This document shows positions 7,080 through 62,978 of a stretch of 64,000 bases of DNA, piece after piece (the first letter of the stretch is position 1; every line of letters begins with the position of its first letter). A program made the translations under genes and the position numbers. A model generated the notes under the pieces. The model was not told the DNA's origin. It saw only the letters and a list, made by a program, of their open reading frames with translations, and ran no database searches. This DNA is from Podarcis melisellensis (taxonomy: Eukaryota). The DNA is taken from the NCBI GenBank assembly GCA_964234715.1, contig OZ174279.1; one strand, 5' to 3'.

Positions 7080-8950
7080 GTTGTAAAAACAGGAAGAATA
7101 AATTTACAAGATAATAAAATAATAATCATAGAAAGCTTAAAAAGAATGACATAAAATATATTCCATGGTGCAAAGCAAGGTTCATATTTCTACCAACCAT
7201 ATACCAAATGTTCATGAATGTTGCCAAAGAAACTTACTTAGTGGGACTGTGCCAATCGTGAGATTGTTTGGTCATATAAATCACAAACGACTCCCAAGCA
7301 GAAGCAAAGTATTTTTTTGAGTCAGTTTTTCAGAAATGGCAATGAATATGACTTTTTTATACCACAGAATAACAAGATGCATCCTTCCACCCTTGAGAGA
7401 TCACTAGATGAGGAACAACCAACAGATATAGAATTTACTGTTGAGAAGTAAGTTCGGCATTGTCAGCATCAAAAAAGATTAAAGACATAGCTTAGCATCC
7501 AAGGTGACCTGTTTGCCAACAATACTACCTATCTCCATTGGAATCTGCTTATGGAATTTGTGTACATAATTACAGTTCTAACACATATGCAAATATGTTC
7601 CTCGTACCTTACAACCCCGCCAGCATAAGGGGGAACCAGATCTTACAGTATGAGCTAGCCAGACCAGAGTTAAAAACCAGCACTGAACCTCTCCCTAATG
7701 TTAGCAGACATGGACCTAAAGGGATACGTGGACCAGATCTTAAGCCACTGAGAATCTTTCAGTTTGCCTATAGGGTTCATCTCCCACACTGATTTCAAAG
7801 CAGTAAGTGGAAAGACCCTGCCTTTTTGGGTGCTTGCCACAGCCAGATGTTCCTACGGTTCCAGGGCTCTAGTGGCTACACCATGTAACATGGGATCTTT
7901 CAAGATGATGCCAATCTGATTGATACATAGCTGATCTACTCCTGAATCTTTCAAGTATTCCAAGAGTTGTGATTCTGTAACTGGCATGTTGTTCTCATAA
8001 CAGTCTTGCAGGCAATGCAGTCCCGCTTTGGAAAGAATAGTAGATACTGTTAATTTATCTTGAGCCTGAAATTGTGGTATATAAGGAAAGGGGACTAAGG
8101 ATGAGGGGTATGGAGGCTAGTTTCTTACACCTTCTGTTCCACATATCTATAGTGTAATAAAGACTTCCATATTGACCTCTTTGGGAGCAAAAAGGGGGTC
8201 ACAATTAGAGGGAGAGAAGGAGAATCTTGTGCATTCAGTGCAACCCAAGATGTTGGTAGATCTGCTAAAATCATCAGAACGATTTGCCATAGCTGAAAGG
8301 CATCAAAATATGTTGGTAAATAAAGGACTTCCCAGCCTCCCTGGCTGGATTTAATTTTGCAGCAAAAAATAAGAAGTTGCCAAGAGGTAAGGGTATTATG
8401 TGAAATCGACAGGACTTGAAATAGAAACAAAATTCTGGTCTACCATTTTTACAGTAGCCACCCTCAAAATCAAAGCCTGCCAAGCCTTCAAGTCCTCTAC
8501 AATATGTTTGGGGGTGGAAGTAGGGTACTTTAAATGAAGCAATTTGTTCAGATTCCTAGGAATTAGAACCCCAAAACATTGCAAGGAGGTAGAACAAGTT
8601 TGGTGGATCATCTAATTTCTGGTTGAGTCTGCAAGTTCACATTCCAAAACAAGGTCTCTGATTTGTCATAGTTTATAAAGAAACCAAACACCACACAACA
8701 ATAATTTATAGTTTTAATTACCTCTGGAAGAGCAGCTTTTGGGCCTTGATGATGGCAGTGTCACCAGCAAATAAGCTAATAAGGTGTTTCCAGGTACCCA
8801 CTGTGAACCCCTGGATTAATGGATTGTTACGATGATATCTTGAGAGGTCTCCAAACCCACAGAGGCCAGAAAAATAGACAAAGCACTTTCCAAGACATAT
8901 AGTAAGAAGCTTCCTTCTGTGCATCTGCATATTATTTTTATTTGTTGCTA
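7080..8950 (-). mobile_element. Degenerate LINE-1-clade ORF2 3' half (RT to C-terminus) plus 3'UTR
   Basis: Fragmented peptides NNPLIQGFTVGTWKHLISLFAGD (FADD-like), GVLIPRNLNKLL, RVATVKM, FLFQVLSI, IVGKQVTLDAKLCL, AISEKLT, FASAWESFVIY; many stops and frameshifts. Confidence 0.8.
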
Positions 8951-11900
8951 GAAGAATAGTGCAGAGTACTCTCATTTTCTCATTAAATATATATAATTAA
9001 GACTTTCCTACAATCCAAATATAAAATCCCTTTTAACACAGAACATTAAGCAACTGAGCACAAAACAAATAGCTCATTTCCTCTCTTTCTTAGATGTCTT
9101 AAAGTCAAAAAAGCAAAGTAAACAGGATGTTCTATAGCCAGCACTTTATTTTATACAGTAGTGGGTATCTTCTAATTCTTGGCGAACAACAAATATTGCT
9201 TTGCCGTCACAGAAAGTGATAAAGACGTGTACAAATAAAATGTTGTTTTTATTCCAGTTAGAAGCCCCAATAGTATTTAAAGTGTTACCACACAATACTA
9301 AAAGAAATAACATTACGCTGTTTAAGTGTAATCTTTGTGTGGACTATTCCTGCTCTCAACAGATAAGTGGGAGCTGCGCCTTGTTATAAAGGAACAAAGA
9401 TTCTATAGCTTATTGTGAAAGTAAAGTTCAAGTGACTGTGCTATAAGGCCTGCTTTAGAAATTTGTTTAAGCTGTCCCTTTAAATGCAATGTTTCCTTTC
9501 AAATCAGTTAGTAAAATCAGAAGTCTTTGTAGATATTTTAAAATATTGTTAACTACACTTCAAAAGGACAAGAAACTAAACATAATAAATGAAATCAGTG
9601 TTATTTCCTTGCTTATTACGGTAGCATGTTAATAGCACTGATCACTCTCTAAACATCTGGTAAAAGATGCATGGGGAAACAGGAACAAGATCTAAAGAAG
9701 AAAAAATTAACATATTTTATAGAGTGGTACTGACAAAAGAAAATTTACTGCTAACAAAGGGGGGTGAAGCTGAGGCAGTACCACACCATTTTACTCAATG
9801 TTGCTTACTTTCATCAGTATCTGTTGGTCCCAATTTTTTAAAACATGCATCAAAGCAAGACAAACAAGCCAGATCACCAATGCAACTTGATAAAGATGTG
9901 GCAGCATAAAGGGAAAGCACATACACAAAAAAAATTGGAATGAAAGATGCCAATATCCTCCAAAGATGACAGTCAGCCATCAGTCTCAGGAACAGCCCAC
10001 GACCCCAAACATAAATATATATACTGTAATTCACAACAAACACAATGAACCCTGATGTACAGAATAATAAATAGGGGTGGACATTTTCAATGTCCTTCAG
10101 AATTTTTTTGGGCAGAAAAGCAAACACTATAAAGAATTGCCCTTCACACAAAAACAGCAGAAATATTAAAGTTCACAGGGCAATCAGCAACTGACTTCTT
10201 TTCCTGGCTGAACCTTTCCAGTCTTTTTTTAGAAACCTTAATAATTGTGCATTCTTAATGCTTGTTTGGGATTTCAATGTCTTTCCTAAAGACTTATCAA
10301 TTTGCCATAGAGATGTTAACCTTTTCCCAGTACTCTAGCCACACTCAATTCAGATGTCACATGTACCAAGCTGCCATGCCTTCCCCCTTCCTCCTTATAT
10401 ACTGAAATTATCTCCAGCCCTATCTGGCAAACTAGCCATAGCATGGCTCTAAACTGGAATCGGAGTCATGGTTTGAAGTGGACTTGAAGCTAAACTATGT
10501 CTAGTGGTAACCAATTCAGGTATCACAAAAAAAAACACCTATGGTTACCACAAACTAGGAAGTGAAGAAGGAGGATGGGCAGGCAAGAAAGATGCTCCTA
10601 ATATTCAAAGCCTGGTCTAAACTGAGCAAATATATTGATAGGAAAATACGTTATTCCCCACTGCTTGTTGAATGCCTGTGTCATCAGTAAATAATCCCAG
10701 ACAGACCACACTTGACTGTATTTGCTGTCCTTTTGCTATTGTAGAACATGACCTTGCCCAAATAAGTTCTCCAAGTTCATTCTTCCACCCGCATGCAACA
10801 CAGCCCACACTGACAGCAGACAAAATACAATACTGAAAATTACCCAAGTTTTAAATTAATAGACAGCCTTTTCTTTACATGCTTTCTTTTGTTTCATTAA
10901 AAAAGAGGACTAAGGTTGCAAATACTCCATTTTGGTTTTAAGATGAAATGCCTGAAACTGTTTATCTAGTGACTAATGCTAAACATCAACAGCAGCTATA
11001 CACCTTCAGCTCAGCTGTAGATTTCTTTGCTTCCAATATCTCACTATGTTTTCAATATTTAATATTGCTTTCCTAATTTTATGTCCTCCATGAGTCATTC
11101 CATAATAATTTTCATAGAATGACCTGACCTGCATTCTGTTCTGGATTTGCTTATAGATGATTTCCAAGGTAAAGTTCACTACACTATACTGCTTAACTAC
11201 ATGGGCTGTATTTTTACCAACCAACATTAGGTAATAGTTAACGAAATGGATTAACACCAGGAACAAGTCAACTGAGCATTAAATAAAATAGCTGGGGAGG
11301 AAAATCTTCGGTAAACTAAAGTTATGCGACCACACAGATCTGTGAAGATTTAAGGGTTTGCAATCAAAAATACAGCATGGAAGATAATATACAAAGCTGA
11401 AAGTCACATTCTTGTTACAAACCAAAAATGCCTTTTAAAAAAGGTCAGTAGTGGTGTTAGAACACTGCTTATTCTCCATGAAATTTCTCTACCTTCCCTC
11501 TTTCTCTGTCAATCTCTTTCTCTACTGACTTACACAGGGGAAGGCGTGAGATAAATGAGAACAGCAAACATAGTTTTTAGTACTTTAGCATCCATCTCCT
11601 AATTGGAGATGGATTGGAGTGCCTTGGAAACCTAATTCACTGCAGTTAGAAAACCTAGACTAGAGGGTCAAAACAATACCCCACCATCTTCACTCAAGTA
11701 CAGAGCAGTCCCTTTGTCATTTAGGCTTTGCTTTAATATATATGCACAGCAGTGATTTTAAAAATGCAGTGTTTGGGTGGGGGCATCCAAATCCAGAGAG
11801 CACAGGAATATAGGGAATCCTGGACCAAGAACCAACTTGAGATCATTGTTATTGTACTATATGGTTAGTGGCTTTTCCATGGCCTTGGGATCAGGTGCTG

Positions 11901-17458: not shown

Positions 17459-17770
17459 CAGTTTGCTAGGAAGCTGGAAAGCAGGAGATCTTTGGCGAGC
17501 GCAGCTGCCCTCCCATTGCTAATAGTAACGAGGGGTCGTCCTTCCCTCCTCCCCTTGTTCCTGCTGCAAGCTCCTAAGAGGAACTGAAAGCTGACACATC
17601 AACAAAGATGGCTGCCGCAGACACCAGAGTGGTTTCAGCTGAGAGAGGAGGAGCGGAGGCGGGGCGAGACTTGGTTTATCCGCCTGCAAGGAGGAGGAGA
17701 GAGAGAAGAGAGGGGAGGAAAGAGGGCTCCGGCTCGCGCACCTCGCCTCGCCTCGCCTAACAGCTTGAGT
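17459..17770 (-). other. CCDC186: Candidate non-coding first exon of CCDC186 (5' end approximate)
   Basis: GC-rich segment with a YY1-like motif (17605-17616) and minus-strand donor CTG|GTAAGA at 17453-17458. Confidence 0.35.
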
Positions 17771-18499
17771 CACCAGAAAGCTCTGCAGCCTTTATCATCT
17801 GCCACGGGCGTGCCATTGACAAGAGCAATAGGGAACCGGGAGGGGCAGGGATGGCTCTCCCTGGTACTTGGCTGGGTGCGTCGGTTCAGGTTACCCCCCG
17901 CACGGGGTTCAGGGGATTAGAGCTGCTATTTACTGAGTCAGGCTGCAAAAACTTTCACAGCCCCACCGCCAGAACCGATTGCCTGTTAAATTAAAAAACG
18001 ATTTTATAGTATAAAAAAGGAGGAGGAGGAAGTAGTGTAGCACTGGAGCCTAGCACAAAATCACTGTCATTAATATTGCCCTCGGGTGCGCGCAGTTTGC
18101 GACGTGCAAAAGGCGGTCCATAGAACCACCAGGATGGCGCCTTTGGAAACCTAAATGATGCAGAAAACAGCAGATCCAAGAGATAAAATGTTTTAGAACT
18201 TCCAATATGACGCTTTTTTTTTATTAGCCCCTTCGCACCCAGAACAGGCGGCCGCATTTTGTAGGTTTGGAAAGCTGCAAAAGATGTGAGGCGGGCATGC
18301 GTGCGTCTGCAAAGCAGAAACGGCGCGAACTGCCTTTCGCTCTAACTTCCCTGCAGCCCACACTTCTGGCTTCTCTCCCCCGCGCCGCCGCCCCGCAAGT
18401 CCTTCCCGCTCAGGTTAACCAGAGCGCATTGTGGCCCGCGAGGCAAGCGCATGCGCCCTTGAGATTTCGCGGCAGTTTTCGCGAGGGAGGGGAGTGGTG

Positions 18500-18759
18500 C
18501 GAAGCTAGGCATAAAACTTCGGAGGCCGGCGCACGAGGCGCCCGGAGCGGGGAGAGAGAGCCGGGGAGGCGTCGTCGAGGGCGCTATTTCTTTCCTTTAC
18601 GTGGCGGCAGCGAGCTGAAGCGCGTTTCTAGGCTTCTGGCGGGGTTTCATCGAGGAGAAGGAGCTGGTTTTAAAAGACCTCCTCCCTCCTCGCGTCCAGC
18701 AGCTGTCCTCGTCTCTCCGTCCCCGGGGGCGCAGGGCTGGGAGTAGGAAGGCCTCTCAG
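18500..18759 (+). other. TDRD1: Putative non-coding first exon of TDRD1 (start approximate)
   Basis: Lies in the CpG island downstream of the NRF1/E2F motifs; donor CAG|GTAACG at 18760. Confidence 0.5.
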
Positions 18760-19159
18760 GTAACGCCCGCAGAGGGTCCGCGGCGGTTTGCTGTTTAATT
18801 CGGGGGTGGGGGGACTTGTAGGTCTCCAGGTACTTATGGACTCCCAACCCCTAGGCAGCATTGCCCAGTGGTAGTGCCGGATAAGCTAAACCAGCTATAG
18901 CTTAGGGTCCCACTCTCTTGGGCCCCCCCAAATTTTTTTAAAGGAAAATAACCTGGATTTGCTTTTTCAAAATATAAGATAAAAAACAAATAAAATAAAA
19001 CCTACATACAGCAACAGTGTTTGTGTTGTGTAGGCTCCTATGATGTAATAATGGGTCCATAAATTACCATGTAGCATATATTCAACACAAAAAGTAACAA
19101 TTTGTTGTTGACAAAGGACAGCTGGACATATAAAGGGCCCCATTACCTTCAGTAGCTTA

Positions 19160-21801: not shown

Positions 21802-24800
21802 GTAGGAAAATACCTCATTTTAAAATAGTTTTAATACCTTTAATCTTGTGTGTTGCTTTTGCAGTTTCACTTATAGTACTTAAATTGTTTTATTGCTTTC
21901 TTTTTGAAACCTTTGAAAATGGAAATGGCTAGTTGTTCCAATTGTGCACTTCCTCAGCTTTAAAATGTGTATTATATAACAAATGCTTTTCTTCAATAAA
22001 CACTTTTTGTGCTGTGTTTTTACAGTTTTTGTATCGTATGAGCAGTCTCAAGTCATTCCTCGGTCATTTTCCACCCACCACCCACCCATCCAGGCTTCAG
22101 TGTTGAAACTCAGCTGTGCAGAAGGTTAAGTTTTCTTTGATTAGAAAATCAACCATTACTTGTTGATTAGCTGCAACAAGTTAGTAAATATTAAAGGAAG
22201 TATGGAGAAGACAGGAAGTTAGATATATATGTAAGAAGAGTTATTGTCAGAACTTATGAGTTTACTTTTTGTTAATTTTGTATTTTTTTGTAACAAATGA
22301 TGTAAACGCATGGCTTTGTTTTGTTCGTGTCTAAGCAAAATAAAGGGGGGGGAGAGAAAGAAAATCAACCATTACTATAGATGAAAAATTGGAAGCTTTG
22401 TTATCAAATCACTTCTCTGTAAGTGTTAAGAACAATGAGTAGCTATTACTTAACCTTGGCAGTTGCCTTCTTGAGTTCTGTTAACATATGGGCAGCTTTA
22501 AATTATCTCATTATGAGCTTGCTTAGGAATAGTCTACCAACTTTAGGTGGTGGTTAATGTAAATGTTTAATGATTAAGCATTGATTTCATGCTGTGCAAT
22601 ATTGTACTTAGTAAATCCATCTGAATTCAGCGTAACTTACTCCTAATTGTGCATAGCATGCAACTCTAGCTGGTTATCAAGAACCATCCAACTGGGTTAA
22701 TTATTAGAAATGTATCTCCCCTTCTACTACTTCTTGAAAAAACTAGGTCAGATCTAAACATTACTATTCTGTATTGTAGGGAAATCAGAAGCCATGAATG
22801 GCGCCAGTACCTTCCTACCATCCTCAGCAAATGAAATAAATCCTGTGAGTTTGCAAGATTTGAGTCTGAATTTTCCACTGCATGTGTCCTTTAATGCCAG
22901 TTATTTTCAGCTTCCTTTGTTAACCCTGATAGTACATGTGTTTTCCCTTGTGGATGTGATAATAGAATTTGGTGGGGCTGGTTCCATTTCTGTTATTTAT
23001 GTGGCAGTATTTTACTATTTTAAGGCATATAAATGTTGCTCAAACAATTCTAAATGTATATTACAGGTACATGCTTCAGCCTTACAACATGCAAAGCCGA
23101 GAAGACTACAGAGCTCTCCTGACAATACTTTATCAACAGGCTGTGATCAATTACACCGGTCCACATGCCATTTTTGTAGAATGTCTGGTAGGTTTCTGTT
23201 ATCTGATCTGATAGAGCCGTGCAAACTCTTACCTTGCAAATTTAAAAAATAATAATTGAAGTTATGATTTTTTATTATAAATTGCAAAGTGAACTCAAGT
23301 ATCAGTTGAAGCCTGTGTCCTTCATCTACCATAAACTTACTTGGTGTGATCTTAGACAAGCCATCATTTCTCAACCACAACTGAAACATCTGAACAAAAA
23401 TTGTGCATTATGTATGAATGATTACTAGGCAACTGTGTGTAGAGTGCTTTGGATACTGTAAGTAAGATGCATGAAAGAACTTAATTTGCGTACAAATAAA
23501 AATTAACCTATACTTATATTTAATATTTTATCTCAAAAATATCTAAATGTAAGGGTACCTTATCCATGTTGATTAACACCTTACATTTTTTACATGTCAA
23601 TGGAAGGGGGGAATTGATGTTTTCAAAATGATGCTAATGGATAATAAAGATTTTCAAACCTAGAGGCTTAGTATTACAGAATTTTACTATGTCCAGTTGA
23701 CTTTAAAGACCATCAACTTAATGGGAACATAGAAGAAAATCTTGGATACTGAATCAGAAATTGCTGACCACATACTGTAATGTCAACGCTTTGTGTTGCT
23801 GTGTTAATCTCTTTAGGATCCTTGAGATGCACACGGTGTAAGCAGGTCTATTACTGTTCAGTGGAGTGTCAAAGGAAAGACTGGCAAATGCATAGTGTCG
23901 TCTGTAAGCTAGTTAAACATAAGTAAGTTTATACGTTAAATTTATCCTCCCTCTGATAACTGGATTTGTATCTGTTTCCCTATAGACATCTGATTGGCTA
24001 CTAGACGGGCTGGACTTGATGGGCATTTGATCTGATCCAGCAGGGCTGCTCTTGTTTATATAGCTCCCGTTAGTGGTCATGTTTCAGAAAGAGGAGCATA
24101 TTTAAGCAGACCTCTGCTCATATTTTAGATGAATACATAGGTTCCCATTCAGATCATGATGCTCAAGCACTATGTGTGAATTAGCATGTACACTCATACC
24201 TCGGGTTGAAGTTGCTTCAGGTTGAGCACTTTCGGGTTGCTCTCCGCGGTGACCTGGAAGTAACGTAACGCGTTACTTCAGGGTTTTGCCGCATGCGCAG
24301 ACGCGGCGAATCGCAACCCACACAGACGTGGGTTGCATTCGCTTCTGGATGTGAATGGGGCTCCGGAACGGATCCCGTTCGTATCCAGAGGTACCACTGT
24401 ACATTTAGGGCCACCACGGATTTTATGTGACTAAATACAAGGAACTACAGCATGATCTTGCAACTTAAGCTATCTCACAGGGTTGTTTTGATGATAAATT
24501 GGGAAATAAACCATGTTATTTGCAGCATCTTGAGGTCCTTGGAAGAAAGCTCAGGTCTCAATTCGATATTATTTAGTTATTTATTTAATTGATTTTTATT
24601 CATTTTATACACCACCCTTTATCAAAAGATCCCAGGGCAGTATACAACATTAAGAACATATTTTATGGAGCATCAATAACAAAAACATAATAAAAAGCAT
24701 AATAGCAGACAGCATAATTAAAAAAACATAATAATAAAATGTTCATAATAACAGTACTCCCCACCTCACCACCACAGCTTTAACAGGCCATAGATTATTT

Positions 24801-33800: not shown

Positions 33801-36800
33801 CAGTTGTGGGTGAGGATATATTGGTATATGAAAAGAGCTATAATGGGACAAGGCTATGGAGGGCTTTGAAGATAAAGCTGAGGAACTTGTGCTAGATCTG
33901 TGTAGAGCTCTGATGAATGATGTTCTGTGTCAGAGTAACAAGAGGTCACTTTTTTTGGGGAGAGAGACGAGACAACAGAAGACCGGAAATGAAGGTTGAA
34001 GAAGTCAAGGAAAGATATTACTAGAATGTGAACCAGAATGCTTGCCAAAGGGGTAGAGAGGAAAGGCTGTATCTTCACAATGTTGTAAAGTGACATGGCT
34101 TCAACAGACAAAGTAATGTGGAAGGAAAACGGTTGAACATGAAGGCTTTGTGCCTGTTCAGCAGGTTGGATGTTGCAAGTTGGGTAAAGAGAGTATTCAA
34201 GGAAAGAAGAGCTTTGGATGAAATATGAGTTTAGTCTTCAGCATACTGGGAGAAATTCAGTGTAGGGCTAAAGAGATTGTTCCATCTGGCAAGCTGAAAT
34301 ACTTCTGCTGATGGAACAATCTTCCCTCTTCTCCTATGTGCAGTTCTGTGTATCCTCCAGACCTACCAACCTACTGTACCAATTTGGGTGGGAGCGAAAA
34401 GCTCTGTTGCACTAATGGAAGACCTTGTGCTGCCTTCTGCTAGTGAGATTCATTAGTTGAATCCAACCCACTAAGTTTCAGGCAGTGTTAAAACATCAGA
34501 TTATAAATAACAAAAGAGACAGTTGGAGATGTGAATTTGGGTAGAGGGAGAAAAGTCTAAAGTACATGGTAGAGCTGGGTGAAATCTGCACTGAATATTA
34601 TAGGATTGAAAGAAGTTGCCCAGGGGCAATGTAGAACAGTATTCTTCAGCCTTGGGTCCCCAGATGTTTGAGCAGACTGAAAAGCAGTGGTATAGGGCAG
34701 GCTTCTCAAATCGGGAGCCCTCCAGATATTTTGGAGTGCAGCTGCATTCAACCCTGAACAATTGTCATGGGAGTTGTAGTCCAAAACATCTGGAGGGATT
34801 GTGGGGGAAGGCTGGCATGGAGAGAGCCCAGCTATGAGACAACAACAGGTCCATGAAAAATGCCAGCACAGAAGGGAAAACCAGAGTAAGTGTGCCCACT
34901 TTTTGGAGCCACTGAAGGAACAATCTAGTAGGAAGAAAAACATCTAAAGTCAGAATCATGGAGACCTAGATCATTGTGAGTTGAGCAGGAGTGAATGGTC
35001 AGCGGTTTCAAAGGCAGCAGGCGAGTCAAGAAGCAAGAGGACTGGAGAGTAGATAAAGGATAGCTTGCAAGTGTAGATAAGCCTGTACTAATTTAAAGGA
35101 CCGTTGAGGTATTTATCGAAGATGAGGTCTTGGTTCTTTCTGTTGATTTACATAGGTAGTTTTGGGGCCTTTCCAGCATTTTTACCCATATGCAGAAATT
35201 GGAGGCTCAGTTCTTCAATAGTTTTTTGTTGTGTTTTTTTAATTCACACTTTGTTGACCTAATGGCCAGTGTCTGGCATTTTATATACAACCAGAGCATA
35301 CCAGAGCATTTTTCACTTGATCTTGGACTTGTAAGTCATTAAAAGTATTACATGGTCGTTGGCACTTTTGCTCTTTTTACAGAAGCAGTAGGATCCCTAT
35401 TGGCCCTAGATTGCAACATCCTTTGGGACTGGGGACCTTTGCAAATCTGTGCCCCTGATGTTTTCTAAAGTAGCATGTGTACTGCTGTGCAGGGAAGAAC
35501 TAGTTTGGCTAGAATTGGCTCAGATTTCTACTCCCACAATGAAAGCCACCACTTGTGTACAGCAGTTGCAGTAAAAATCAGTATGTAGCATGGGGTTGTT
35601 AGTCGTATAATTTTTACATGACAAATGTATTTTTATCTTCCAGAAGACAAACAGTGGTACCGTGCATCGGTTTTGTCCTACATCTCAGAGAAAACTGCTC
35701 TAGTGGGCTATGTAGATTATGGTAACATAGAAGTCCTTCCATTAAATAAACTTCGGCCAATCATTCCAAAATTAATGGAGTTACCAGTACAGGCTATAAA
35801 ATGCACCTTAGCAGGTATGAAACAGAATGACTAAATACATCTGGAGAATAGCACACACATTTTTTTTGCAACTTAGTGAGGGAAACAAAGAGATTAACCT
35901 GTGGAGACAAAATGGAAATTGAAGCTGTGCCATAAAATTTGTACCAGGTACAGCTTCTGAATTTAGATACAGAATCATCCCAGTTACAGATAGGTAGCCG
36001 TGTTGGTTTGCCATAGTCAAAACAAAAATTTCCTTCCAGTAGCACCTTAAAGACCAACCAGGTTAGTTCTTGGTATGAGCTTTCGTGTGCATGCACACTT
36101 CTTCAGATACCTGTAAGAAGTGTGCATGCACACGAAAGCTCATACCAAGAACTAACTTAGTTGGTCTTTAAGGTGCTACTGGATAGAATCATCCCAATTA
36201 GGCATCAATATGATGCAACCTGCACCAGGCAGATTGGAGATTCCTTTGGAAGTGTTGTGATAGGAAATAAAGTTGTCTGTATATTGATTACTGTATTAAC
36301 TCCTTTTATTTAAAGCCTACCATTAAAAGCTTGCTGTGTCTGAGGCTCATAGTATGAAATACTTAACATAGTTCAAATTATTCTTTTTCCTAGAGTTGGC
36401 AGCTTTGTGATATTCTCTAGCCCTACCTTATTCATATTGGGTTTTGGATTGTCACTGACCTGGTAGTCCTAACTATGCCAGTCAATGGCCCAGAGCTGTG
36501 TTCTCCCTGAGCAGACTTGTCTGACACTTCTTGCAAACATTGTGGGAGGCACAGCAGCAGAAAAGGCAAAACGTTAGTAGCCATTTGGTGCTTCCCCAGA
36601 GGCAACAAAAGCTCTTGGGTCAACACTGCATAGATATTAGTAAAGCCTCTTCTGATAACAAAGGAACATTTTTGTGCCATTTTGTTGTTTTGGGAATATG
36701 AAATAGAGAATTATGTGTGGGGTATGCAGATAATTGGTTACCTGATCGAAAATGTTAGAAATATACTTTTATTGCTGATGGACTTATATCATTACAAAGA

Positions 36801-39800
36801 AAATTCTGTTACAAAGAAAAATAACTAACTTGTAACGGAGTAAATTTTGTAAAGGAGTAATTTTTTTATTTTTATTTTTTAAACCCGTCTCTTATTTCAA
36901 GGTGTAAAGCCAGCATCTGGAACCTGGTCTACAGAATCAACTTCTGTTATGAAGAAGCTGGTGCAAAATAAAGTTCTCACTATAAGAGTAATAAATGAGA
37001 AGGACAAAACTTTTGTGGTCAAACTTACAGATGAATCCAGGACTCCAACAATAAATGTGTCTAAATACCTTTTAGAGTTGGGATGTGTAGTGGAAGATGC
37101 CACCACTGTCCCAGCAGTGCTTGAAACAAGCACTGGAACATTACAAAAAATGAGTGGTGAGTATGTGAAAACTAACTAGCTTTATTAGCTGTATTAGTAA
37201 TTTACTGTGAATATTACAACACTGAATAAGACTCAGATTTAGGAACAGCATTCATTATTTTTGCTGCTCCACTGTTACTAATCACATATTTGTTGTACCT
37301 AATCTATAATACTCAGACAACATCTACCCAAATCTCCCTGTGAAACTAAAAATGGGGAAATATATTAGAGTTTGCTGATGGGGATCTGTTAAATTTCCAC
37401 CAGTAGAATGAACATTGAAAAAACATTACTCCTAATGGTTATTTTTATATTTATCTATAGGTCAACAGCTGGACAAAATTGATTGGTCAAGGGTCACATT
37501 AACAGCCAAACAGGTGGCAAATGTGTTTGTTTGTGTGCTACACAACCCCAGCAAATTCTATTGCCAATTGTTAGACAATAACGGTACATCTTTCTTTTTT
37601 CCCCTTTGAGTGTTCTGTTCCTTGTGTATCAATTTTTATATTTGAACCATCTATAGCTCTCTTTCAGTCACATGCCCCAACACTCAGCCTGTTATTTACA
37701 TATCTATCCAATGTCTGCAAACAAGTATGATTCAGAAACCTGGCAGGTGTGCCATTGCTTTTTTCACTCACGTAGTTGTTTGTGCAAACAACTTTACATA
37801 GATAGCATTCATCTTGTGGAGCAACCTCTTCCATTTTGCACAGTGAATATTAAGAGGGCATAATTCTGTCACACTCCTGCATGCATCTTGTTTGGTTCTC
37901 TCTCTCCCCCCCCCCCCCCAGTTAGTGCAATAATGGAGAGGAATGTAAACAGTAACTCTAGCTACATTTTGTCCTATTGCTCAATAGCTTTATACAGCAA
38001 AACCTCGGTTCCAGAATGGCTCCGTTTTGAAATGTTTCAGCTCCCGAATGCCAGAAACCTGGAATTCCGGGTTTTGAACATTTTTCGGAAGCCGAACGTC
38101 CGACACGGCTTCTGCTTGGGTGCAGGAAGCTCCTGCAACCAATCGGAAGCCACTCCTCGGTTGTCAAACATTTCGGAAGCTGAACGGGCTTCTGAATCAG
38201 ATTAAGTTTGACATCCAAGGTTTGACTGTATTTATAAACTGTTTTCAAACTCAGCACCATCATTGGTACACTTATTCAAACTTCCTATCATATGGTTATG
38301 TAGCAGTTCTGTGGCAGCAGTATTGCTTGGTGGAGTTCTTCCATATTAGCTGTTTTAGAAAAGGTTGAGACGATAGCTGACTTAAGCCATATATTAGAAG
38401 GAAGGCCTCTAGACTTTTCTCATTAAACTTTTGACAGTGGTTAGTGTTGCAATTTCAATCTTAATTTTGCAGGCTTGAATGCTTTGGAAGAACTCAATAT
38501 ATCTTTAGCAGCATACTGCCAGAAAACAGCCCCAAACATTTCCAAAGTTACAAAGGGAGATGTGTGCTGTGCTTATTTCTCTGGTGAGTAAGTTTACTTA
38601 TTGCTCATAATCTTCTGTATTGCATTGATATTTTATAGAAATCACATTTCTCCGTTTGCTGTGGAAAGTATCCAACTGAGTACTTCCGACACCTGGTGCT
38701 TTTAGACATACACTGAGCAATTGAAATGTCATGCAGTTCATGGCCTTGGCTCCTTTCACCCCAATTCCCTAGAAGGAAAGGCATCCAGCAGAGCAATGGA
38801 GCAAGAACTGCATTGTCGCAATTTACGAAACAGTAGATTTCATTCCATGCTAATAATGCTAATACGAATACTGCTCAAGACAGCTTGCAAAAAAATAAAT
38901 AGTAAAAATGCAATAGTATAATGATGGTAATACATAATGTGATAATTCTTAAGAATTAACAGTTCCTATAAAATGTATCAGAATTGAAGTAAGCACACCA
39001 CTTACCAAAAGGTCAGTTATTAATATCCCAAAGAAGCCCCAAAGCTGATACCATTTGTACCTAGACATCACCCCAGGCACCCAGCGTTTATGCCTAAACT
39101 CAAAAGGCCACAAATACCCTCTCAGTTCTCCTAGCAGCTACTCCCTTAAAAATGTTCCAGGGGCATAGCAGAGGGAAGCTGCCATCTTCTGATGGCAAAG
39201 AAGAGTCTCCTCACTAAGCTGTTGCCAGGGCTGAAGATAGGTCTTGATATGTATATTATTTTTTGATTATTATCCATTATCCTTCAATAGGATATTAGTA
39301 CTTTTCTTGCAATATGACAGAGTAACTTTAACGTCTGACTAAAAATGAAATCGCTTTGAAATAGGGGTAGCATGAATCTGCTATATCTGTCTACGCCCAA
39401 GTAAGACATGAAGCAAAAGGTCAGACTACTGTTTTTAGTGAGAGAGTAAATTATTTGTATGCTTATTGGATATTACAAGATCTTTGTCTCTGTCTTATTT
39501 TAATTTAGGTGATGGTAGATGGTATCGGGCTTTGGTGAAAGAAGCCAGTTCATTTGAAGCTTTTAAAGTTCTGTTTGTAGATTATGGAAACTGCGAAGAG
39601 GTAACTCTGGACAAAATCAGACAGATTACATCTACATTTATGAAACTCCCATTTCAAGCAATTGAATGTTCATTGTCAGGTACAGTTACCTTACTTCAGT
39701 AGAAATCTCTTGAACTGCAAATAAGATATAAAGTTACACTGTTTTAAACAATATTTCTGCTTAAGGTGTATTCCTGAATCTAAGATCCAAAATGTTAATC

Positions 39801-42800: not shown

Positions 42801-45800
42801 TAATTGCTTTCTTAAAATGTCTAAAATAAGCCTATAGAGCTTGTAGTCTACAAGAGGGAGATGATGGCTGAATTTCATACTATCATGTTTAAAATAGGTA
42901 ACTTCCAGTTCTTGCATAACAGCTTAGTTGGATGAAATGGTATCATGGGAAAGAACCATTTTCTTGGGTAGCATACGATGGGTGATATGGTGAAGACCAT
43001 ATTATTAAGTGGTAACCTTTACTACTACAGTAACTGAGTGACCACCCAAATGGATTATACATACAGCCCTTCAGTAACCTGAAGCATCTAATCCTTTTTT
43101 GGAGGCACAGAATTTGACAGCATACATCCTCGCTTCTTTCTCTGGTTCCAATGAATCAGTTGCCTCCTTAGGAGAAAGATAGTCCAGAGTTGGGTTGCTA
43201 AACAAGTAACAGCATCTTTAATTGGTGTGGCTGTCTCTAACTGTGTAGAGATCTCTTCTGCCCTGGTGGGAATAACATAAGAAGTAGCAGCCATGCAACC
43301 AAGACTTGAAAATCCCTATTGCTGTTTTCATCTATGTACTGATAGAGCAATAGACACATGTCCAGAACTACAGTGATAGTATTTCAGCATTTAGGGGCAC
43401 TTTGTCTAGGTTCAAACTAGGGAGGCACGTTATTCACTCTGCAGTCTTTTTTAATCTTTTCTGGCCAAGTGGTGTGAACTTGAAATGTAAATTCCTCACA
43501 AGTGAGCTGACTTTTCTGATTGCCAAATAATGTGAATCAAGTGGCATCACATCGTCTAAAGGCAGGCCAGTGAATCATAATTTCCAAATCTCCTTAAGTT
43601 GTGAAAATCTAGCTTTTAGGGAAATGCTTACTGGTTTCAGGTTTAAGAGAAATCTCTTTTAAGCAGGATATACAGTTTCACATAATGGTAAGTCTCTTAA
43701 AATGTAAAATGGTAAGTCTTAAATTTTGTTCACTTTTTTAGGTGATGACAATTGGTACCGTGCTGTTGTCCTGGAAGTTTGTGTATCAGAAGTCAAAGTG
43801 GCATATGCAGACTATGGAAATGTGGAAATATTGCCATTCTCTAGGCTTCTACCGATAACTGCCCCCTACTTGGAACTACCTTTTCAGATACTCAAGTGCT
43901 CCATTGCAGGTAGCAAACCAGCTAGAGCAATTTGTCAAAAAACCAAATGCCTTAATATGTATATATATTCACATGTATACAGAGCCTTGAATTTTAATGT
44001 GTTAATAAGCAGTGCTAATGTTATGTTGTAATTTTCTTATGGAAATCCCTTGGAGAGAAAAAGTGGAATGTAAATATGAAATTAAAATTGTCAAATGTTC
44101 CATAGGGCACATGCCAGAGGTAAAAGCAGGTACAAACATAAATGCTTTCTTTGTACTGTAGGGTAGTTTTGCACACATTCACACACCCCTCTATCCTCCA
44201 ACCAGGCAAGCAGGAGGCATTATCAAAGTTTTAAGGGCACATTCCAGCTAGGCAGAAACACTCAAGGAGAGTACAGGACAGGTTAGGGTATAGCCTGGGA
44301 AGAGGGTGTGTGGCTGAGGAAGAGGTGGAGCCTGGATAGATCCTAAGCGCCAGACAGAGAGGACTAGAAGGGCCACAGTTGGCCTTGAGGTCTGAGGTTC
44401 CCCACCCCTGTCTTAAAAACATTGCAAAAACTATTCTTGTGGTGGCAGAGTTCATGTGCAAGAAGGATTGCAAATGTATTTAAATATAAATGGAGTAGTT
44501 TTCATTATTTTAATGGCACTGAGTATTTAAATATAAATGGAGTAGTTTTCATTATTTTAATGGCACTGAGTATTTAAATATGAACAGAGTAGTTTTCATT
44601 ATTTTAATGGCACTGATTTTAAGAAAAGCAATGTAAACTGTCAGATTTATAAGCACTAGAATTGTAAACTGTCAGTAGCATAGATTTGAATTTAAGGTTT
44701 ATTTGTCTTCTAGGAATTATGGAACTGGATGGAAAGTGCTCCATCTTAGCAGCAGAGAAGCTGAAAAGTTTTTTACTGAATGAGCGTGTGACAATTACAG
44801 TGAAAGGAGTTAATAAGAATATTCACATAGTAACTGTCAAAAAAAATTCTGGAACTGATACTATGAATGTAGCTGATGAACTAGTAATCGAAAACTCGGC
44901 AAAAGATAGCAGGATTGAGAATCGTAAGTAATTTACCCTGAAGTAATTTCTTGCTAAAATGTAACCCACCTACTTACTATAAAGATTTGAAAAGTTTGTT
45001 ACTCCATAACACAAATTTTTAGTTGGTACTTTATTTTACAAAATTGGAAATGCCTTGCTATGGGCAGCCTTATTGCTGTTCTGTGGTGTAACAAGAAGCT
45101 ATATATATTTGTTTTTCTTTCAGGATGCGTAAAGAACACCAAGTGCTGTTGTATGGAGCTGAGAAAGCAAGTAAGTTTCAATTTGGAGTTGAAGTTCTGT
45201 TTGTTTCCAAATCCTGATTACTTGCAGAGCCAATGCAAGTTTGTTTTGTTTTGGTTTTTTGTATCCACCTTCAGACCAGAGCTGGTCTGCCCATGACGCG
45301 GGGTGAAGTGCTTGTCTCAGGCAGCAGAAGTGCCAGAGGTGGCGCTCCACCCACCCCACCACTTCTGCCACTGAGAGGGAGGTGTTCTGGCTCACAGCAT
45401 TGCTGCTATCAGCCAGAGAGGTCAAGTGAGCAGCAACGTGGATCCTGCTGAGTTTGGCAAGAGCCAAGGAATTCCTGCATGCCATTTGTGGCTTGGCAAC
45501 ACCTAGAGGAGTGCCTTGGATCCTGCCAAGCTCAGCAAGAGCCCGGGCACAGCAGTGGCAGAAGTGGGGTGTCATGGCCAGGAGCAGGAGGCGGCAATTC
45601 CCATTATGGAAACATCAGACACTGGCATAAAACATGTTTTTAAGAGGTTGCTGCCTAGCTCACTTTATAAAACTTAAGCATTTGTTTTCTAGATGACATT
45701 TGGATGGCAAACAATATTGACTTCAAAATGTTACTGTATTTCATCAGCTTTCCAACTGATTTTCAGTACATTTCAATTGATTTTGAGAGATGAGTTTGGA

Positions 45801-46372: not shown

Positions 46373-48499
46373 ACAGCATAGTATAGTTGTTGAGTACTGT
46401 TGAAATCCATACTGTTCACTCTAACCTAAGCCTGTAATCTTAAACTATTTAGTTGAAAATACATTCTGTTGACATGTCAGAATGTAACTACTTAAGTACA
46501 TAAATCAAGGTTTATTTCCTGTCTTGCATTTTGGATTGCATGCTTGCCTTCAGAAGATGGTCTGGGCAGTGTTTGTTTTCTCTCTCTCATCCCTTATCAG
46601 TGTAACCAATTGCATCTTTATCATTACTCAAGTTGCAAAGATCAGCTTCCTCTGGGTTGATCTGATCAGAAGTTTAAAGGCATGATGCCTTCTGGATAGA
46701 AGGGTTTTTACTTCAATCTCTTAAGAAATTACTCAGTCCAGACACGACAATTCATTTAAATCTTTGTCTCCATTAAGTAGCCCATAACGGCCTCAATTAT
46801 TTGGCTTAAAAATCTGTAAGTTTCTTATGTGTCTAATTATAAAATGGCTTTTCAGAAGTATTTAGGACTTCACATAAAGAAATAGATTTGTTTAGTTATT
46901 GTAGCTAGTAGAATTGTGGGTTTGTTTGTTCTTTTCATTTTTTGAATCCTTTTTGGGGGAAATGTAAGTTGATTCTCTTTGTTTTTATTATTTAAAAACT
47001 ACTCCCAGACTGCAGTCCTCACCCCTCTCCTGATGATGATGTGCTGGGAAGGATTAGGATGGTGTGTGTTGAGGTGCAGAGACTGGTGCTGAATCTGGGC
47101 AGGTGACAACTTCCTGCCTCTGGTTCTCCCACTGTTGATAGTTAGCACAAAACCCTGTTTCAGGTTGGAGGTAGGTGATGGAGGCTTTGGATATGGGATA
47201 CAAAGCAGGAGTGGTCCCCTAAGGACCCAGTTCCCAGGCACGTCTGTTGAGTCAACTCAGTGGATGCAGCAAAAAGCAGGAGAAACTCTGCTCTTCCCCC
47301 GCCCCCTGGCTGTCAGGTCTTCATATGCAGCTGCAGGTTAGAATTGCTCAGTTAGTCCTATTGGTCACAGTGAGATTTACTTCTGAATAAACATCCGTAA
47401 GATTGTGCTGTGAATCTTCTTTACATCGAAACATTTTACTCTTGAGCCTGTTCGTGCATGGCCTTCAGTCACAGAGAAGTGCAACTCCAAATTGATCATA
47501 TACTTCACGTTGTGACTAGGTTACTAGTAAAGGCTAGAATTTAAATGTAACTACACAACTTCTGCAGATGAACAAGGTCCATGAGCACTTAATTTATTTA
47601 GTCCTTGGGATAAGATTACACTGAAGCCTGTTACAATGGGATCTGCCTGCAGGTGGTAATAGCCCACTCATAGTTACTTCTCTGGTCTCTCAGCTGATGG
47701 GCCCCTGTCACAAGGCAGGGAGCTGTGCTACATCTAGGTCAGCAGTTCCAAACATTTTGCCACACACACCTGAGTCTTTGTGCACCAGTTAATAGTTTTT
47801 CTGCCTGTTGTAGCAGTTGTACTAGATGCAGTCAAATCTTTAATTGTAGTTTATTTGCTGCGGCTGTTACTGTATTGCAATCCGAATTCCATAGAATTCA
47901 AACTATAATAGAATATAAGAAAGAATAGCAATTGAAATACAATTAAGCAGCAGTGTGTGAATACTTAATTTGATTATGCCCTATCGCCTGTCTTCAACCA
48001 CCCCATCCACCGCAGACCATTGTGAATCCCTGATCAAAATGGATGCAAGCCTAACAGTTTGAGAACCCCTTTGATTTATTCTTTCTGCAGCAATGAAGGC
48101 GCTTTCTAGAAGTAAATGTATAAAGGTTCAATAAGCATCTTGCGAGACTATGCATGCATTTATGTATGAGCCATGGGGTGATTGGGGATTTGAGAATTGT
48201 GGCTGTAGTTCATGATAACATACTTGCGGGGACATGAGACTGGGATAGCTCCATCAAACATTAGCCAGTGTTTGGTGAATGGAAAACAAGTCAATTTCCT
48301 TCGAATCAACTCCAGCATTAGTCGAGATAGAGCCCTCACCACAGGCAATGGATGAGGGAAGCACTTAAAATCCACGTTGTATATGAGGACATGCTTTGCC
48401 CCAGCAACCTGAAAGGGAAGCAAAGCAGGGTGGGTCTGTGCCCCCAGTCTCCTCTGGCTTTAGTTCTGACCCCAGTATGTATTTGCTTGTTGACATTCC

Positions 48500-49575
48500 T
48501 GGCCGGCATTCCTCACCTTAAAGGTACATTCCTCTGGGTCAGGAAGCCACCCGCCCCGCCGCTCCTTTGGGAAGCGCCTCCCTCCCACTCTCGACGTTCA
48601 GATGGGCAGCAGCTGGAGTTCCGCCCGGAGCCTCGAGGTTGGCTTGGTTTGGAGGGCGAGGGGCGTCGATCAGCGCGTCATTCGCACCTCCTTCCGCGGG
48701 CACCCGGTCAAAAGTGTGCACGGGGCGGGAGGCGGAGGTTAGGAGGGGAAGAAGGGGCTTTCCTGGGATCGCCTGGCTGTCCGCTCGTAGTCCAGGATTG
48801 GTGCAAGCGCAACAGCCGTCGGAAGACGTTAAGGCGCTTTGGCGATCGCAGCAGCTGTCTCTGCGCCTCCCCGGAGGAGGAGAGAATCTGCCCCACGGCC
48901 ACTATTGGGGGTGAGCGGCCGATGCAAGATCTGCCTGTGCTGCAGCGCAGTCCGTGACACAGAAAGGGGAGGGGGAAAAGGACGGCTAGGTGTAGAGAGC
49001 ACCTGGGGGTGGAGGGATAAAACTTGACCTCGCCTTCCGTCTGGCAAAGATTGCTCTGCACTTCCATTGCTTCCGTCTGGGGATCCGCAAGGGAAGCGGT
49101 AAGTTCCACGAGCGCCTCGTTCGCGATTTGCAAAGGGAGCCGCGAGTTTATAGTAGGGAGGCTGCAAACCCGAAGCAAAAGTAAAATGAAAGCAAGTGTG
49201 CATGGTTCGGCCCTGCGCTCAGCAGCTTGGAGATCTGTGGCGCAGAGCAAGCGGCGCTTCGGGGACAGAAATCCGGCAGACCCGATGAAGAGTGAAGGAG
49301 AGAAGTGAATGCGCCGGGCGGTCCTGGCATTGGGAAAGCAAGCGCAGAAGTAGCAGAGGGCGAGCCTGCCGGCGGGGCTTGAATTTCAGCATCCTTTCCC
49401 TTTCAATCTGCAGCAATGCATTTGGGCGCTGGGTCTCCAGGAATTGCTCTTTGAAATGAGGGCGCCTCCCGCACCAGCGCCTGAAGATGCGCAACGGTCC
49501 GAGCGCAGCCGGTGGCACGTTTTGCAACTTTCAGAAACAAACTGCACAACGTAGGGCGGGGTGGGGGCTTCGGGA
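48500..49575. promoter_or_regulatory. VWA2: CpG island, probable VWA2 promoter and first non-coding exon
   Basis: CpG-dense; GC boxes (48551-48560, ~48722); TATA-like GATAAAA near 49016; donor GCG|GTAAGT at 49099. Confidence 0.7.

Positions 49576-54497: not shown

Positions 54498-54575
<78 letters not shown>
54498..54575. repeat. Compound (AT)n(CA)n microsatellite
   Basis: Read directly. Confidence 0.97.
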
Positions 54576-59274: not shown

Positions 59275-61561
59275 CCTCTATGCAAAGTACAATCCTATAT
59301 GATGGGTAGTCCAGGTCAGTAAAACCCTACATGCATAGAAATCATAGGGTCCAGGGAGCTGGGGACAGGGTTTGGGCCATCATGTGAAGAGGTCTCTCGG
59401 AATAAGCCAAACAAAAATATAGGATGTAGGGTTTTCATAACTGGCTTCCCCAATGTTTGCTTTTACTCATAAGCAGATGATAGTGGAACTCTGAAATTGA
59501 TTGGAGCAGTATGGAGCAAGGCGATTTAACTCTTCCCTTAAAGATGGCATTTCTTGTTACTTTATTAGAATAATGTGTGTCCCACCTTTTACATCTACCA
59601 GAGTAGGACTCTGAGAAGCTAAGAACATTCAAGAAACAACAAAGCAATCATTAAAAATTAAAATGGGGAGGGGAAGAAACAAGACACAAGAGGGCAGATA
59701 ACTGAAAACATAATCATCTGCTTAAAATAAACAAGGCTAATAAAAAGCCTTGCTCCTCTACTGCACACAGCAGCTTCCGAGGTGTGGATTGAACACTGGG
59801 CAGAGTGGAAAGGCTAGCAGGAACCCTTCTCTTAGTGTCACCGCTGTAATCAAAATTAAGACAATCATTTCTCCTGCATGGCTGCTGTGAAAAAACATAG
59901 CAATAGAAACTTTAGGAACGCTGATCTTAGATTTCTCCCACATTTAATGGAATTTGGCCCATATAGCATGGGGGAATACAATTTGTAAGATTCCATTTCT
60001 GATTTTGCCCATTGTCTCTGCTGTAGTTGGGCTTTCAGTAACTGAATCTGATAGCTTTTCTGTGCACTGTTTTGAGTGCTGTAACATGGAAGCAGCCTTT
60101 ACTTGCCGACATGCTTATTCCCTATTTATCAGTGCAGTCCTTTTTCTTCCCCCCTTTTTTTTTACTAATTTCAGGGATGTAGAGTATTTACAGTGACTGA
60201 AACAAATGTTTTCCAAATTTCCAAGGGCATGTTTGTGCTTTGCCCATTTTCACAGGCCCCTCCCTGTAAAATGAAAGGATAACCTTAGCTTAATCCAACT
60301 CTGTCAACTTGAAGCTTCTACCTTGGCACACACTCCCAGCAACTAGTAATTGCCTTGCAGGCAAGTTTGTGCATGCTCAGGTAACACCAGGACATGGTCT
60401 CAGGAAAACCTGATGCTAGTATGAAACTGACTCTGAGAAACTTGCTTCAAGAAACCACAAGTGTTTAAACTTATGAATTTAATAGAATCTTAGAGCCGCA
60501 AGAGACTGTAGGGATCATTAATGCCAAGTCCCTCAAGCAGAATGCAATGTACCTAAATCATCCTTAACAAAGCTGTAAAGTCAAAAGAGGCTCCATGACA
60601 TCTCGTTTGTGTCTTTAAATAATAAGAGAGAGAGAAAATTCCTTTCAGCGCATAGGCAGTCATGATTAATCAGCAATTTATGGCAGCTACTATTGCAGAT
60701 ATAACTTCTGCTTCTTTCAGACTGCAGTTTCTATGATATTATGACACCCCCCCCCCCAATGAGAAGGTTAGTTGAGCTTAGAGGAATGATCCATCTTTGG
60801 GGAATATTAAGACCTGACCCTGAAAGTTGTTGACCCAACTAGGGATGTGCTTTAAGGATCAGTACAGAATCTGTGGTTCTGCAAAAGCTGTTGGGATGTA
60901 ATTCCCATCATCCTTGGGCATTGGTCATCCTGGCTGAGGCTGATGGGAATCAGGGAGTCCAACAGTATCTTGAGGGTTGCAGGTTTAAAGGCTTTCTCAG
61001 GCTGGTGTTTGGAACCGCAAGGCAAGACAGTTGCTTGCAACATGTAACCATATGGCTACGTTCAATATTATCATCTCTCCCACTTCCTGGATTTTGGAAT
61101 GGCTGGAGTGATGCTGGTTAGATCCTGATCGCTTGTGATTACAGACACCACACAGAGAGGGGTGTGTGAGTGTGATAAAACTAGCCTACAGTACAGAGAC
61201 TAAATTCACAGTTATTGTTCTGCCTATTTTTGCCTGTGCCCCTTGCACTGAAAAGGGTTCTCCACTCGTGATCTAGAGGCTGAAAACTTTAGCAACTGGG
61301 AACAAAACAAAGAAGTGTAATGTACTGAGTTTTTGTTTAACGAATGGTGATGTGCATTTGAATTCTTATTTCCTTCTGGACCTTCACTTGCTAATGTATT
61401 ATAATGAATGTTATCCTTGGTTTCTTTTCAGCATGTATACTTCATCCCACCCCCCGCCAGTCCTCTTCTCCTCCTCCTTCTGTCCTCCCAGCCAACCTGA
61501 CTTCTTAACATTATTACTATGTGTTGTGATTAACCCCCCCCCCCCTTTTCTCTTCTGCCAG

Positions 61562-61695
61562 TAATGAATTGCTCTGCCCCAGTTGATGTCTTGTTTCTGT
61601 TCGATGGATCCTACAGCATTGGCAAAGGGAGCTTTGAAAGGTCAAAATACTTAGCAGTCAAGCTTTGTGATGCTCTGGACATCAATCCAGGAAAG
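61562..61695 (+). CDS. VWA2: VWA2 coding exon 3 (first VWA domain, MIDAS DxSxS)
   Basis: LMNCSAPVDVLFLFDGSYSIGKGSFERSK...LDINPGK; tgccag / GTGAGC. Confidence 0.95.
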
Positions 61696-61938
61696 GTGAG
61701 CGCCCTCCACCCCCAGTTTATTCCACTCACTGGGTGCCGTGTAGAATTTGGGAGATGCATGTTGTGTATATCTGTAGGAGAATATAGGCAACTTGGGGAA
61801 TTCTTGTTAGTTTATCTTTATGGGGTTTGCTAGTTCACTTCCCATGTCTGTTCTTGCTGTAGCCATTTTGAGCATTCCTGGAATGGTAGCAACTGCATAA
61901 AAATAAATCCGCCTTGTTTACCTTCCCTCCCCTTTCAG

Positions 61939-62048
61939 GTCAGAGTGGGAGCAATACAGTTCAGCAACACTCCTCATTTGGAGTTCCCTTTGGATGCATA
62001 TTTCACCAAGCAGGAGATAAAAGACAAACTCAGGAAGATTGTGTTCAA
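61939..62048 (+). CDS. VWA2: VWA2 coding exon 4 (gene continues beyond the window)
   Basis: VRVGAIQFSNTPHLEFPLDAYFTKQEIKDKLRKIVFK; tttcag / GTAAGA. Confidence 0.95.
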
Positions 62049-62978
62049 GTAAGAATTATTATACGTGCGAGTTCTTATTAAGGAAGTTAAAATAAGTAGT
62101 TGGCAAGTAATAGTTTCATTCTGATAGTTGCATGTTCATGTTGTATTTGGAACATTTTACTTTCTATGTTGTGAATGAAATATTTTATGATTTATTCATT
62201 GATTTATATCCTGACTTCATTATTTTATGGAATCGGGGATGGGGGGGGCATCCATTTGGTTCCCAACTGGTCTCCTGTCAACCAGACCACCAGCTTAGCT
62301 TCAGCAATATGATGGCCTCATGTACCTCCAGATCATTTCCTGGGACCTAACTTAATTGGTATATTTATATTTAAGCTGATTTTCTATATCTAGCCATATT
62401 CGATGTCCCATGGTACAAATAGTTTAAATGTCAGTCTAACTTAACAAAAAGGCTGGCATGGGAGTAAGTTATGTTTAATCTAATAGGTCTTATTTCCAAG
62501 TGGATGTGTTAAGAATCAGAGTGTGGGCCACCAACTACAAAAGTTCTGCTAGAACAGACCAAAGGCATGGATACAGCTTCCTATTCTCACAGTAGCCAAC
62601 CAGATGCTTATGGGAAGCCAGTAAGTGGGACCTGAGTGTAACTGCACTTTCCCTATTTGTGATTCCAAGTAAAATAGTATTCAAAGGCACACAGCCACCC
62701 ACCCCCTAAGTGTGCTTAAGACCATGAGATTACAAACATTACAGTGAATCAGAGATGGTCTCTTGGTGACAACCTTTATGTACAGCAAGGACTTACCATT
62801 CCTTAGCTTTGGAATTCCTTCTAGTGTACATGCGTGGTGGTTACATTCTGGACCTCCACGTTCATCGGCGGCACCCACATAAGGCCACCTCTCTCCATTC
62901 CGCCCCCTTTTGTGATGTCACACACATATCAGACACACCTAAGACAGTCACTGCCTGTATTCCAGAAATGATGTAGGG

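Follow-up and report, generated by a model that had tools for sequence, protein, structure and literature searches.

Minimal hammerhead ribozymes are a recurrent feature of animal Penelope-like elements (PLEs), where their hallmarks are one additional nucleotide separating position 9 from position 10.1, a G10.1-C11.1 pair, a long helix II and a palindrome in place of helix III (PMC4209133). Hammerheads lie in the pseudo-long terminal repeats (pLTRs) of PLEs, and an inverted 5'-truncated copy together with a tail of 30-40 bp on one side only is typical of these elements (Craig et al. 2021, PMC8557442). Among lizards, the purified PLE protein of the green anole cleaves and extends both strands of its target (Frangieh et al. 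2024, PMC11167929), and reverse transcription of the anole element starts at two adjacent internal sites, the spacing of which corresponds to the tail (PMC11167929). The present analysis concerns a hammerhead motif in 64,000 nt of genomic DNA from the lizard Podarcis melisellensis (GenBank assembly GCA_964234715.1, contig OZ174279.1), the whole of which is referred to as the window. The motif lies in an intron of a gene resembling TDRD1, and the locus is very probably a young insertion, non-coding and 5'-truncated, that derives from the 3' end of an abundant PLE family and in which the hammerhead is a passenger motif. As an insertion it is of an already described kind, and ordinary.

The hammerhead motif

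An earlier note on this DNA had proposed that the minus strand holds an intact minimal hammerhead, and both a direct reading of the sequence and a descriptor scan of the window bear this out. From 36111 down to 36072 the minus strand reads, in succession, GGUAU, CUGAAGA, A, GUGUG, CAUG, CACAC, GAAA, GC, UC and AUACC, and 36072-36111 is confirmed as a complete minimal type I hammerhead motif. Stem I (GGUAU/AUACC) has 5 bp, the core C3-A9 is CUGAAGA, and an extra A (36099) follows A9. Helix II (GUGUG/CACAC) also has 5 bp and carries a CAUG loop, its closing G10.1-C11.1 pair being formed by G36098 and C36085. GAAA occupies hammerhead positions G12-A15.1, and the place of helix III is taken by a loop-less palindrome, AGCU (A15.1, G15.2, C16.2 and U16.1), at 36081-36078. 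On the minus strand U16.1 and C17 fall on 36078 and 36077 and A1.1 falls on 36076, giving the cleavage triplet CUC and a predicted cut between 36077 and 36076, exactly where the note had placed it. The entire conserved core (C3 U4 G5 A6 N7 G8 A9, G12 A13 A14 A15.1 and U16.1 H17) is present within 36072-36111.

The likeness to the minimal hammerheads of metazoan PLEs is close. Shared features are the type I arrangement, the CUGANGA core, the additional nucleotide that separates position 9 from position 10.1, the G10.1-C11.1 pair and the palindromic 15.x-16.x positions (Cervera and de la Pena 2014, PMC4209133), and in addition a long helix II (5 bp), an AGCU that can pair only between copies and a triplet of the NUH class, here CUC (PMC4209133; Lunse et al. 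2017, as cited in PMC6765202). The extra A before helix II is a signature of the PLE hammerhead family and no defect, since the motif displays every published trait of the PLE minimal form. One base of the fifth stem I pair, G36111-C36072, lies where the two arms described below meet, and many family copies cease to match this copy at 36110/36111; the junction may thus have contributed to the pair.

The scan covered the two strands of the window with a relaxed descriptor of the minimal hammerhead (CUGANGA, an optional bulge, helix II of at least 4 bp, GAAA, 0-4 nt, UH, and stem I of at least 4 bp), and 36072-36111 was the one site returned. Of 200 simulations of the window under a first-order Markov model, one gave any match at all, a mean of 0.005 per window, and the motif is not a chance match.

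Structure of the insertion

The hammerhead is not free-standing, being part of an insertion of about 200 bp (35982/35987-36184) that is flanked by a target-site duplication. The insertion is built around two inverted arms of 74 nt, 36030-36103 and 36115-36188, which are 95% complementary and separated by 11 nt. The body of the long, or main, arm (36033-36111, minus strand) corresponds to the sense strand of the element, its 5' truncation falling where the hammerhead begins. In the minus-strand direction this arm starts at 36111 and crosses the shared sequence, after which it has a further 46 nt (36032 down to 35987), a tail that includes a T-run and an AC-rich segment, is present on this arm only and represents the 3' end of the element. 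The short arm (36115-36184, plus strand), which lacks a tail, has its 5' truncation within the CUGANGA core; it ends at ...CTACTGGAT (36184), where the long arm goes on. Between the arms, the 11-nt head-to-head junction (36104-36114) falls within the hammerhead core, in a sequence that is almost palindromic and reads CAGGTATCTG on the minus strand.

The duplication is a 16-nt direct repeat with a single mismatch (94%), its left copy being AGAATCATCCCAGTTA (35971-35986) and its right copy AGAATCATCCCAATTA (36185-36200). The first 11 nt of the left copy match the right copy perfectly. As family contigs in three sequencing runs begin to match at 35982, the last 5 nt of the left repeat (35982-35986) may be the element's own end, and the true target-site duplication may then be the perfect 11-mer AGAATCATCCC.

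Over the roughly 70 nt that the arms share there are just two differences, opposite 36059 and 36061, both outside the motif, and at both of them the short arm carries the majority letters of the family. At these positions the plus-strand letters of the long arm are C and G, against T and A in the complement of the short arm and in about 82-84% of the family word depth, so that the long arm shows a T-to-C change and, two bases away, an A-to-G change. Ordinary mutation, differences between templates or changes akin to editing in a hairpin could each account for them. The insertion is without an open reading frame (ORF), the ATG in loop II opening just 9 codons, and no further copy of the motif, the arms or the tail was found in a search of the window.

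Empty site, family abundance and position in the host intron

Contigs of four public runs were compared with 35400-37400. In a related organism whose flanking sequence diverges by about 2%, a contig of 2,473 nt (run X23, record 24) covers 35400-35947 and then 36185-37400; it has 17 letters of its own where the window has 237, and resumes exactly at 36185, the first base of the right duplication. A duplicated target site, and a relative in which the site is empty, are both expected of a PLE insertion and are both observed here.

In three related species, 7,522 to 11,772 contigs per run match, nearly all of them on 35936-36203, and the summed word depth over this interval, which is not a copy number, lies four orders of magnitude above that of the flanks. 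The insertion belongs to a very abundant repeat family, and many of the other family copies are single-armed. Sites that vary in at least 10% of the word depth among family copies number 2 of 72 in the motif versus 6 of 77 outside it, too few to claim constraint. At 36077, about 15% of the family word depth has A for G on the plus strand, which is U17 for C17 on the element strand and still a permitted cleavage-site base; this is the only site of the long-arm motif that varies in at least 10% of the family word depth.

The intron that holds the insertion is delimited by a 1,519-nt contig (run X1, record 2) from a related organism, which joins 35641-35812 directly to 36900-37158; the contig is spliced, and the run therefore contains RNA. 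Of the runs registered as RNA, none contains the stretch. Taken together, this joint (with a 2-nt AG ambiguity), a GT at 35815 and an AG at 36900-36901 place the intron at 35815-36901. The preceding exon (35641-35814, plus strand; Pfam TUDOR E = 9.7e-19) encodes the core of the second Tudor domain and is followed by the donor GT at 35815, and the next exon (36902-37158, plus strand) follows the acceptor AG. The insertion lies inside this intron, 172 nt downstream of the donor. With the host gene on the plus strand and the motif on the minus strand, the intact motif is antisense to the host gene. The claim of a Penelope-type motif antisense to a TDRD1-like gene is accordingly sustained by the hallmarks of the motif, the architecture of the insertion, the host exons and the splice evidence.

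Assignment to Penelope-like elements

Assignment of the insertion to PLEs is supported by its architecture in combination with the type of motif. A 5'-truncated copy adjoins an inverted 5'-truncated copy, and a tail (35987-36032), slightly above the published length, is present at one end only. Complex PLE insertions (PMC8557442; Evgen'ev and Arkhipova 2005) likewise combine strong 5' truncation, an abutting inverted copy, an extension at one end and a duplication; the present insertion differs from them in being very short (about 200 bp), in having no ORF and in having no tandem pLTR (PMC8557442).

The Poseidon element PAc of Anolis carolinensis (PMC11167929) also has a lizard host and a hammerhead near the 3'-terminal template region. 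The products of its insertion are attributed to the cutting and extension of each target strand together with two internal starts of reverse transcription that bound the tail, and its target is fairly AT-rich, as is the site here. The ORF of PAc starts at helix II, whereas the 9-codon frame from the loop II ATG in the present insertion indicates that the family, or at least this fragment, is non-coding. Animal retrozymes that are not of the long-terminal-repeat class (de la Pena et al. 2020, PMC7229834; Li et al. 2026, preprint 10.64898/2026.07.22.740005) resemble the insertion in being non-autonomous, hammerhead-bearing and related to PLE pLTRs. Retrozymes consist of tandem units with canonical type I hammerheads and can give rise to circular RNAs, whereas the locus in Podarcis has a single motif and no tandem unit, and therefore no circle is possible.

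Several observations weigh against a PLE origin or fit it imperfectly. The 46-nt tail somewhat exceeds the published 30-40 bp, and in the contig of run X23 the empty site is imprecise by 6 nt. Five short strings of the insertion (four over the motif, arm and tail, and one of 9 nt over helix II and GAAA) had no match in the text supplements of PMC11167929. Homology to a PLE bearing reverse transcriptase and a GIY-YIG domain forms no part of the support for the assignment. A search with hammerhead models, which the earlier note had recommended, gave a divided outcome: the relaxed descriptor built for this analysis finds the motif once, but Rfam release 15 yielded no hammerhead match in the whole window at gathering scores, and none of its hammerhead families matched stretches of 401 nt or 60 nt around the motif at E <= 10. 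The Rfam failure is likely to reflect the fact that a motif without helix III is ill-suited to canonical models. In the study of PMC4209133, the detection of PLE hammerheads itself required a new relaxed descriptor.

Predicted activity of the motif

In isolation, the minimum-free-energy fold of the 40-mer consists of the 5-bp stem I and the 5-bp helix II (-10.1 kcal/mol). As part of the insertion, the RNA is predicted to form a hairpin of about 75 bp, with an energy of -133 kcal/mol for the minus strand and -137 kcal/mol for the plus strand, and enforcing the hammerhead helices within a 398-nt minus-strand context costs +53.9 kcal/mol. Dimerisation offers little relief in these predictions, the bimolecular double hammerhead reaching -17.7 kcal/mol versus -37.2 kcal/mol for an inactive dimer that pairs by way of helix II, which is fully palindromic. 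The descriptor scan of the window returned no further motif on this strand with which a dimer could form in cis. Co-transcriptional folding would be no rescue, since transcription of the minus strand makes the complementary arm first. Stem I is moreover open-ended and has no loop for a tertiary contact with loop II, a contact that natural hammerheads need at cellular magnesium levels (PMC4209133).

To judge from the folding energetics and the literature, the motif is almost certainly inert in this copy, because it has no dimer partner and no tertiary contacts and would be sequestered in the hairpin of about 75 bp on either strand. Here the locus departs from the described PLE minimal hammerheads: it stands alone on its strand within 64 kb and lies in a fold-back whose predicted stability outweighs that of the ribozyme fold. 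The published activities are themselves modest, and the earlier note's statement that PLE hammerheads "cleave efficiently mainly as dimers" is too strong. Activity in vitro is low even as dimers (PMC4209133; reviewed in PMC6765202), and cutting by the hammerhead of the anole element depended on the addition of the element's protein, RNA-seq showing no ends at the site of the cut (PMC11167929).

The same predictions raise the alternative that the fold-back hairpin, and not the hammerhead, is the functional unit, its double-stranded RNA of about 75 bp being edited or processed into small RNAs resembling microRNAs (miRNAs), small interfering RNAs or PIWI-interacting RNAs (piRNAs), with consequences for the element family or the host gene. 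The very stable hairpins predicted on both strands (-133 and -137 kcal/mol) speak for this, as do sub-threshold Rfam matches to several miRNA-precursor models, but these matches lie far below gathering scores and fall in unrelated plant and animal miRNA families, as any long hairpin would give. The insertion is also absent from the related species, leaving no conservation, and thousands of similar fold-backs exist in the genome; the alternative is highly unlikely. The sub-threshold Rfam matches were discounted as a sign of a miRNA gene at the fold-back, since a long hairpin draws such matches in general. TDRD1 is a gene of the piRNA pathway, for which germline expression is expected, and small RNAs from the fold-back would, if they did arise, place a silencing trigger for the family within the TDRD1 expression programme. 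That the lone antisense hammerhead cleaves in trans-dimers with other family transcripts, or that small RNAs from the fold-back act on the family's thousands of related transcripts, has only a slender chance of being true.

The broken plus-strand counterpart

The plus-strand counterpart of the motif (36112-36146) reads CUGUAAGA, followed by the same helix II, GAAA, GCUC and AUACC. Given CUGUAAGA in the core, and AUACC without a 5' strand to pair with, this copy is no hammerhead, and its description as broken in the earlier note was correct. From AAGAAG onwards, the short arm is identical to the long arm across the whole motif. The favoured explanation, from a comparison of the arms, is that the broken copy is not a mutated hammerhead, the shorter arm having ended at the junction inside the catalytic core. 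In other copies of the family, 111 listed joints skip from arm to arm at many different positions (for example 36019 to 36137, 36048 to 36155, 36086 to 36121 and 36110 to 36154), and the arm junctions of other copies therefore fall at many positions. It is the position of the junction that decides which strands keep a full motif.

These observations bear directly on the proposal that purifying selection on TDRD1 disabled the copy on the host-sense strand and left the antisense motif intact. What recommends it is the arrangement itself, intact on the minus strand and broken on the host-sense strand, but the plus-strand copy was truncated at an arm junction formed at the time of insertion and not mutated. 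Besides the centre, the arms differ at two positions, neither within the motif, and junction positions vary widely among copies. A lone motif in a hairpin, at a predicted cost of about +54 kcal/mol and with no dimer partner, would not be expected to cut the intron efficiently, and there would therefore be little for selection to act on; published activity, too, is low or protein-dependent. Selection against the sense copy is not supported and deserves hardly any credence. The simpler option that the earlier note had held in reserve, an inversion junction, is favoured, with the junction of this copy (36104-36114) inside the core and those of other copies elsewhere. A miniature inverted-repeat transposable element whose terminal repeats happen to contain a hammerhead-like string, an idea suggested by the 74-nt inverted arms and the flanking direct repeat, is scarcely credible given that the arms are unequal, with a 46-nt extension that makes the inverted repeat non-terminal on one side, that a duplication of 11-16 bp is atypical of cut-and-paste families, that other copies have differing junctions and many are single-armed, and that the motif has all four published hallmarks of PLE minimal hammerheads (PMC4209133).

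Proposed origin of the insertion

Derivation from a PLE, with the hammerhead inherited from source copies of the family, would account for the locus through priming on two strands, a mechanism that is likely by analogy with the published in vitro work on the anole element. The GIY-YIG endonuclease of the element would make staggered cuts in the TDRD1-like intron, and both freed DNA ends would prime reverse transcription of the element RNA. One complementary DNA (cDNA) would start at the outer internal site and yield the long arm with its 46-nt tail, and the other, starting at the inner site, would yield the short arm without a tail. The converging cDNAs would then be joined head to head at 36104-36114, the near-palindrome inside the hammerhead core, where annealing would be favoured by CAGGTATCTG being nearly its own reverse complement. 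As a result, a complete hammerhead would remain in the long arm, on the minus strand, and the short arm, on the plus strand, would be left without stem I and without part of the core.

The host gene and its surroundings

Host exons were searched singly with Pfam on the plus strand. A zf-MYND finger lies at 23768-23923 (E = 5e-13) and is followed by Tudor core exons at 30424 (E = 7.6e-11), 35622 (E = 9.7e-19), 39442 (E = 6.4e-20) and 43723 (E = 2.1e-14). N-terminal halves of Tudor domains, weaker and under the Pfam cut-off, are found at 28079, 38445 and 42565, and exons with a VWA domain at 61534-62049, all on the plus strand. The combination of a MYND finger and four Tudor domains is the architecture of TDRD1, and the VWA gene beside it matches the neighbourhood of the mammalian locus; the host is named a TDRD1-like gene by this domain architecture and synteny.

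Two GC-rich, CpG-island-like regions, 17500-18800 and 48300-49500, contain many overlapping long open frames on both strands, and Pfam gave no match on these frames. The first, which precedes the MYND exon, is likely to be the TDRD1 promoter, and the second, between the last Tudor and the VWA exons, is likely to be the promoter of the downstream VWA gene. On the minus strand, an acidic- and serine-rich open frame of 225 codons without a Pfam match (4184-4858) may be a large coding exon of a divergently oriented upstream neighbour, which in mammals is CCDC186. A second minus-strand frame, of 224 codons and likewise without a Pfam match (63188-63859), lies in the region of the VWA gene on the opposite strand and may be a degraded repeat. 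Three AT-rich tandem units of 47 bp, 96% matching, occupy 44476-44616 in an intron of the TDRD1-like gene just upstream of the ORF segment 44668-44928, and two perfect dinucleotide microsatellites are present at 2197-2248, (GA)26, and 54498-54541, (AT)22.

Implications

An intact and a broken ribozyme on opposite strands follow automatically from unequal truncation of two arms, which calls for caution wherever such a pair is met; it is not to be taken as a sign of selection without genome-wide counts. With a duplication, a one-sided tail, a junction inside the catalytic core and an empty site in a sister species, the insertion in Podarcis provides an example that fits the model of two-strand priming and internal initiation for PLEs.

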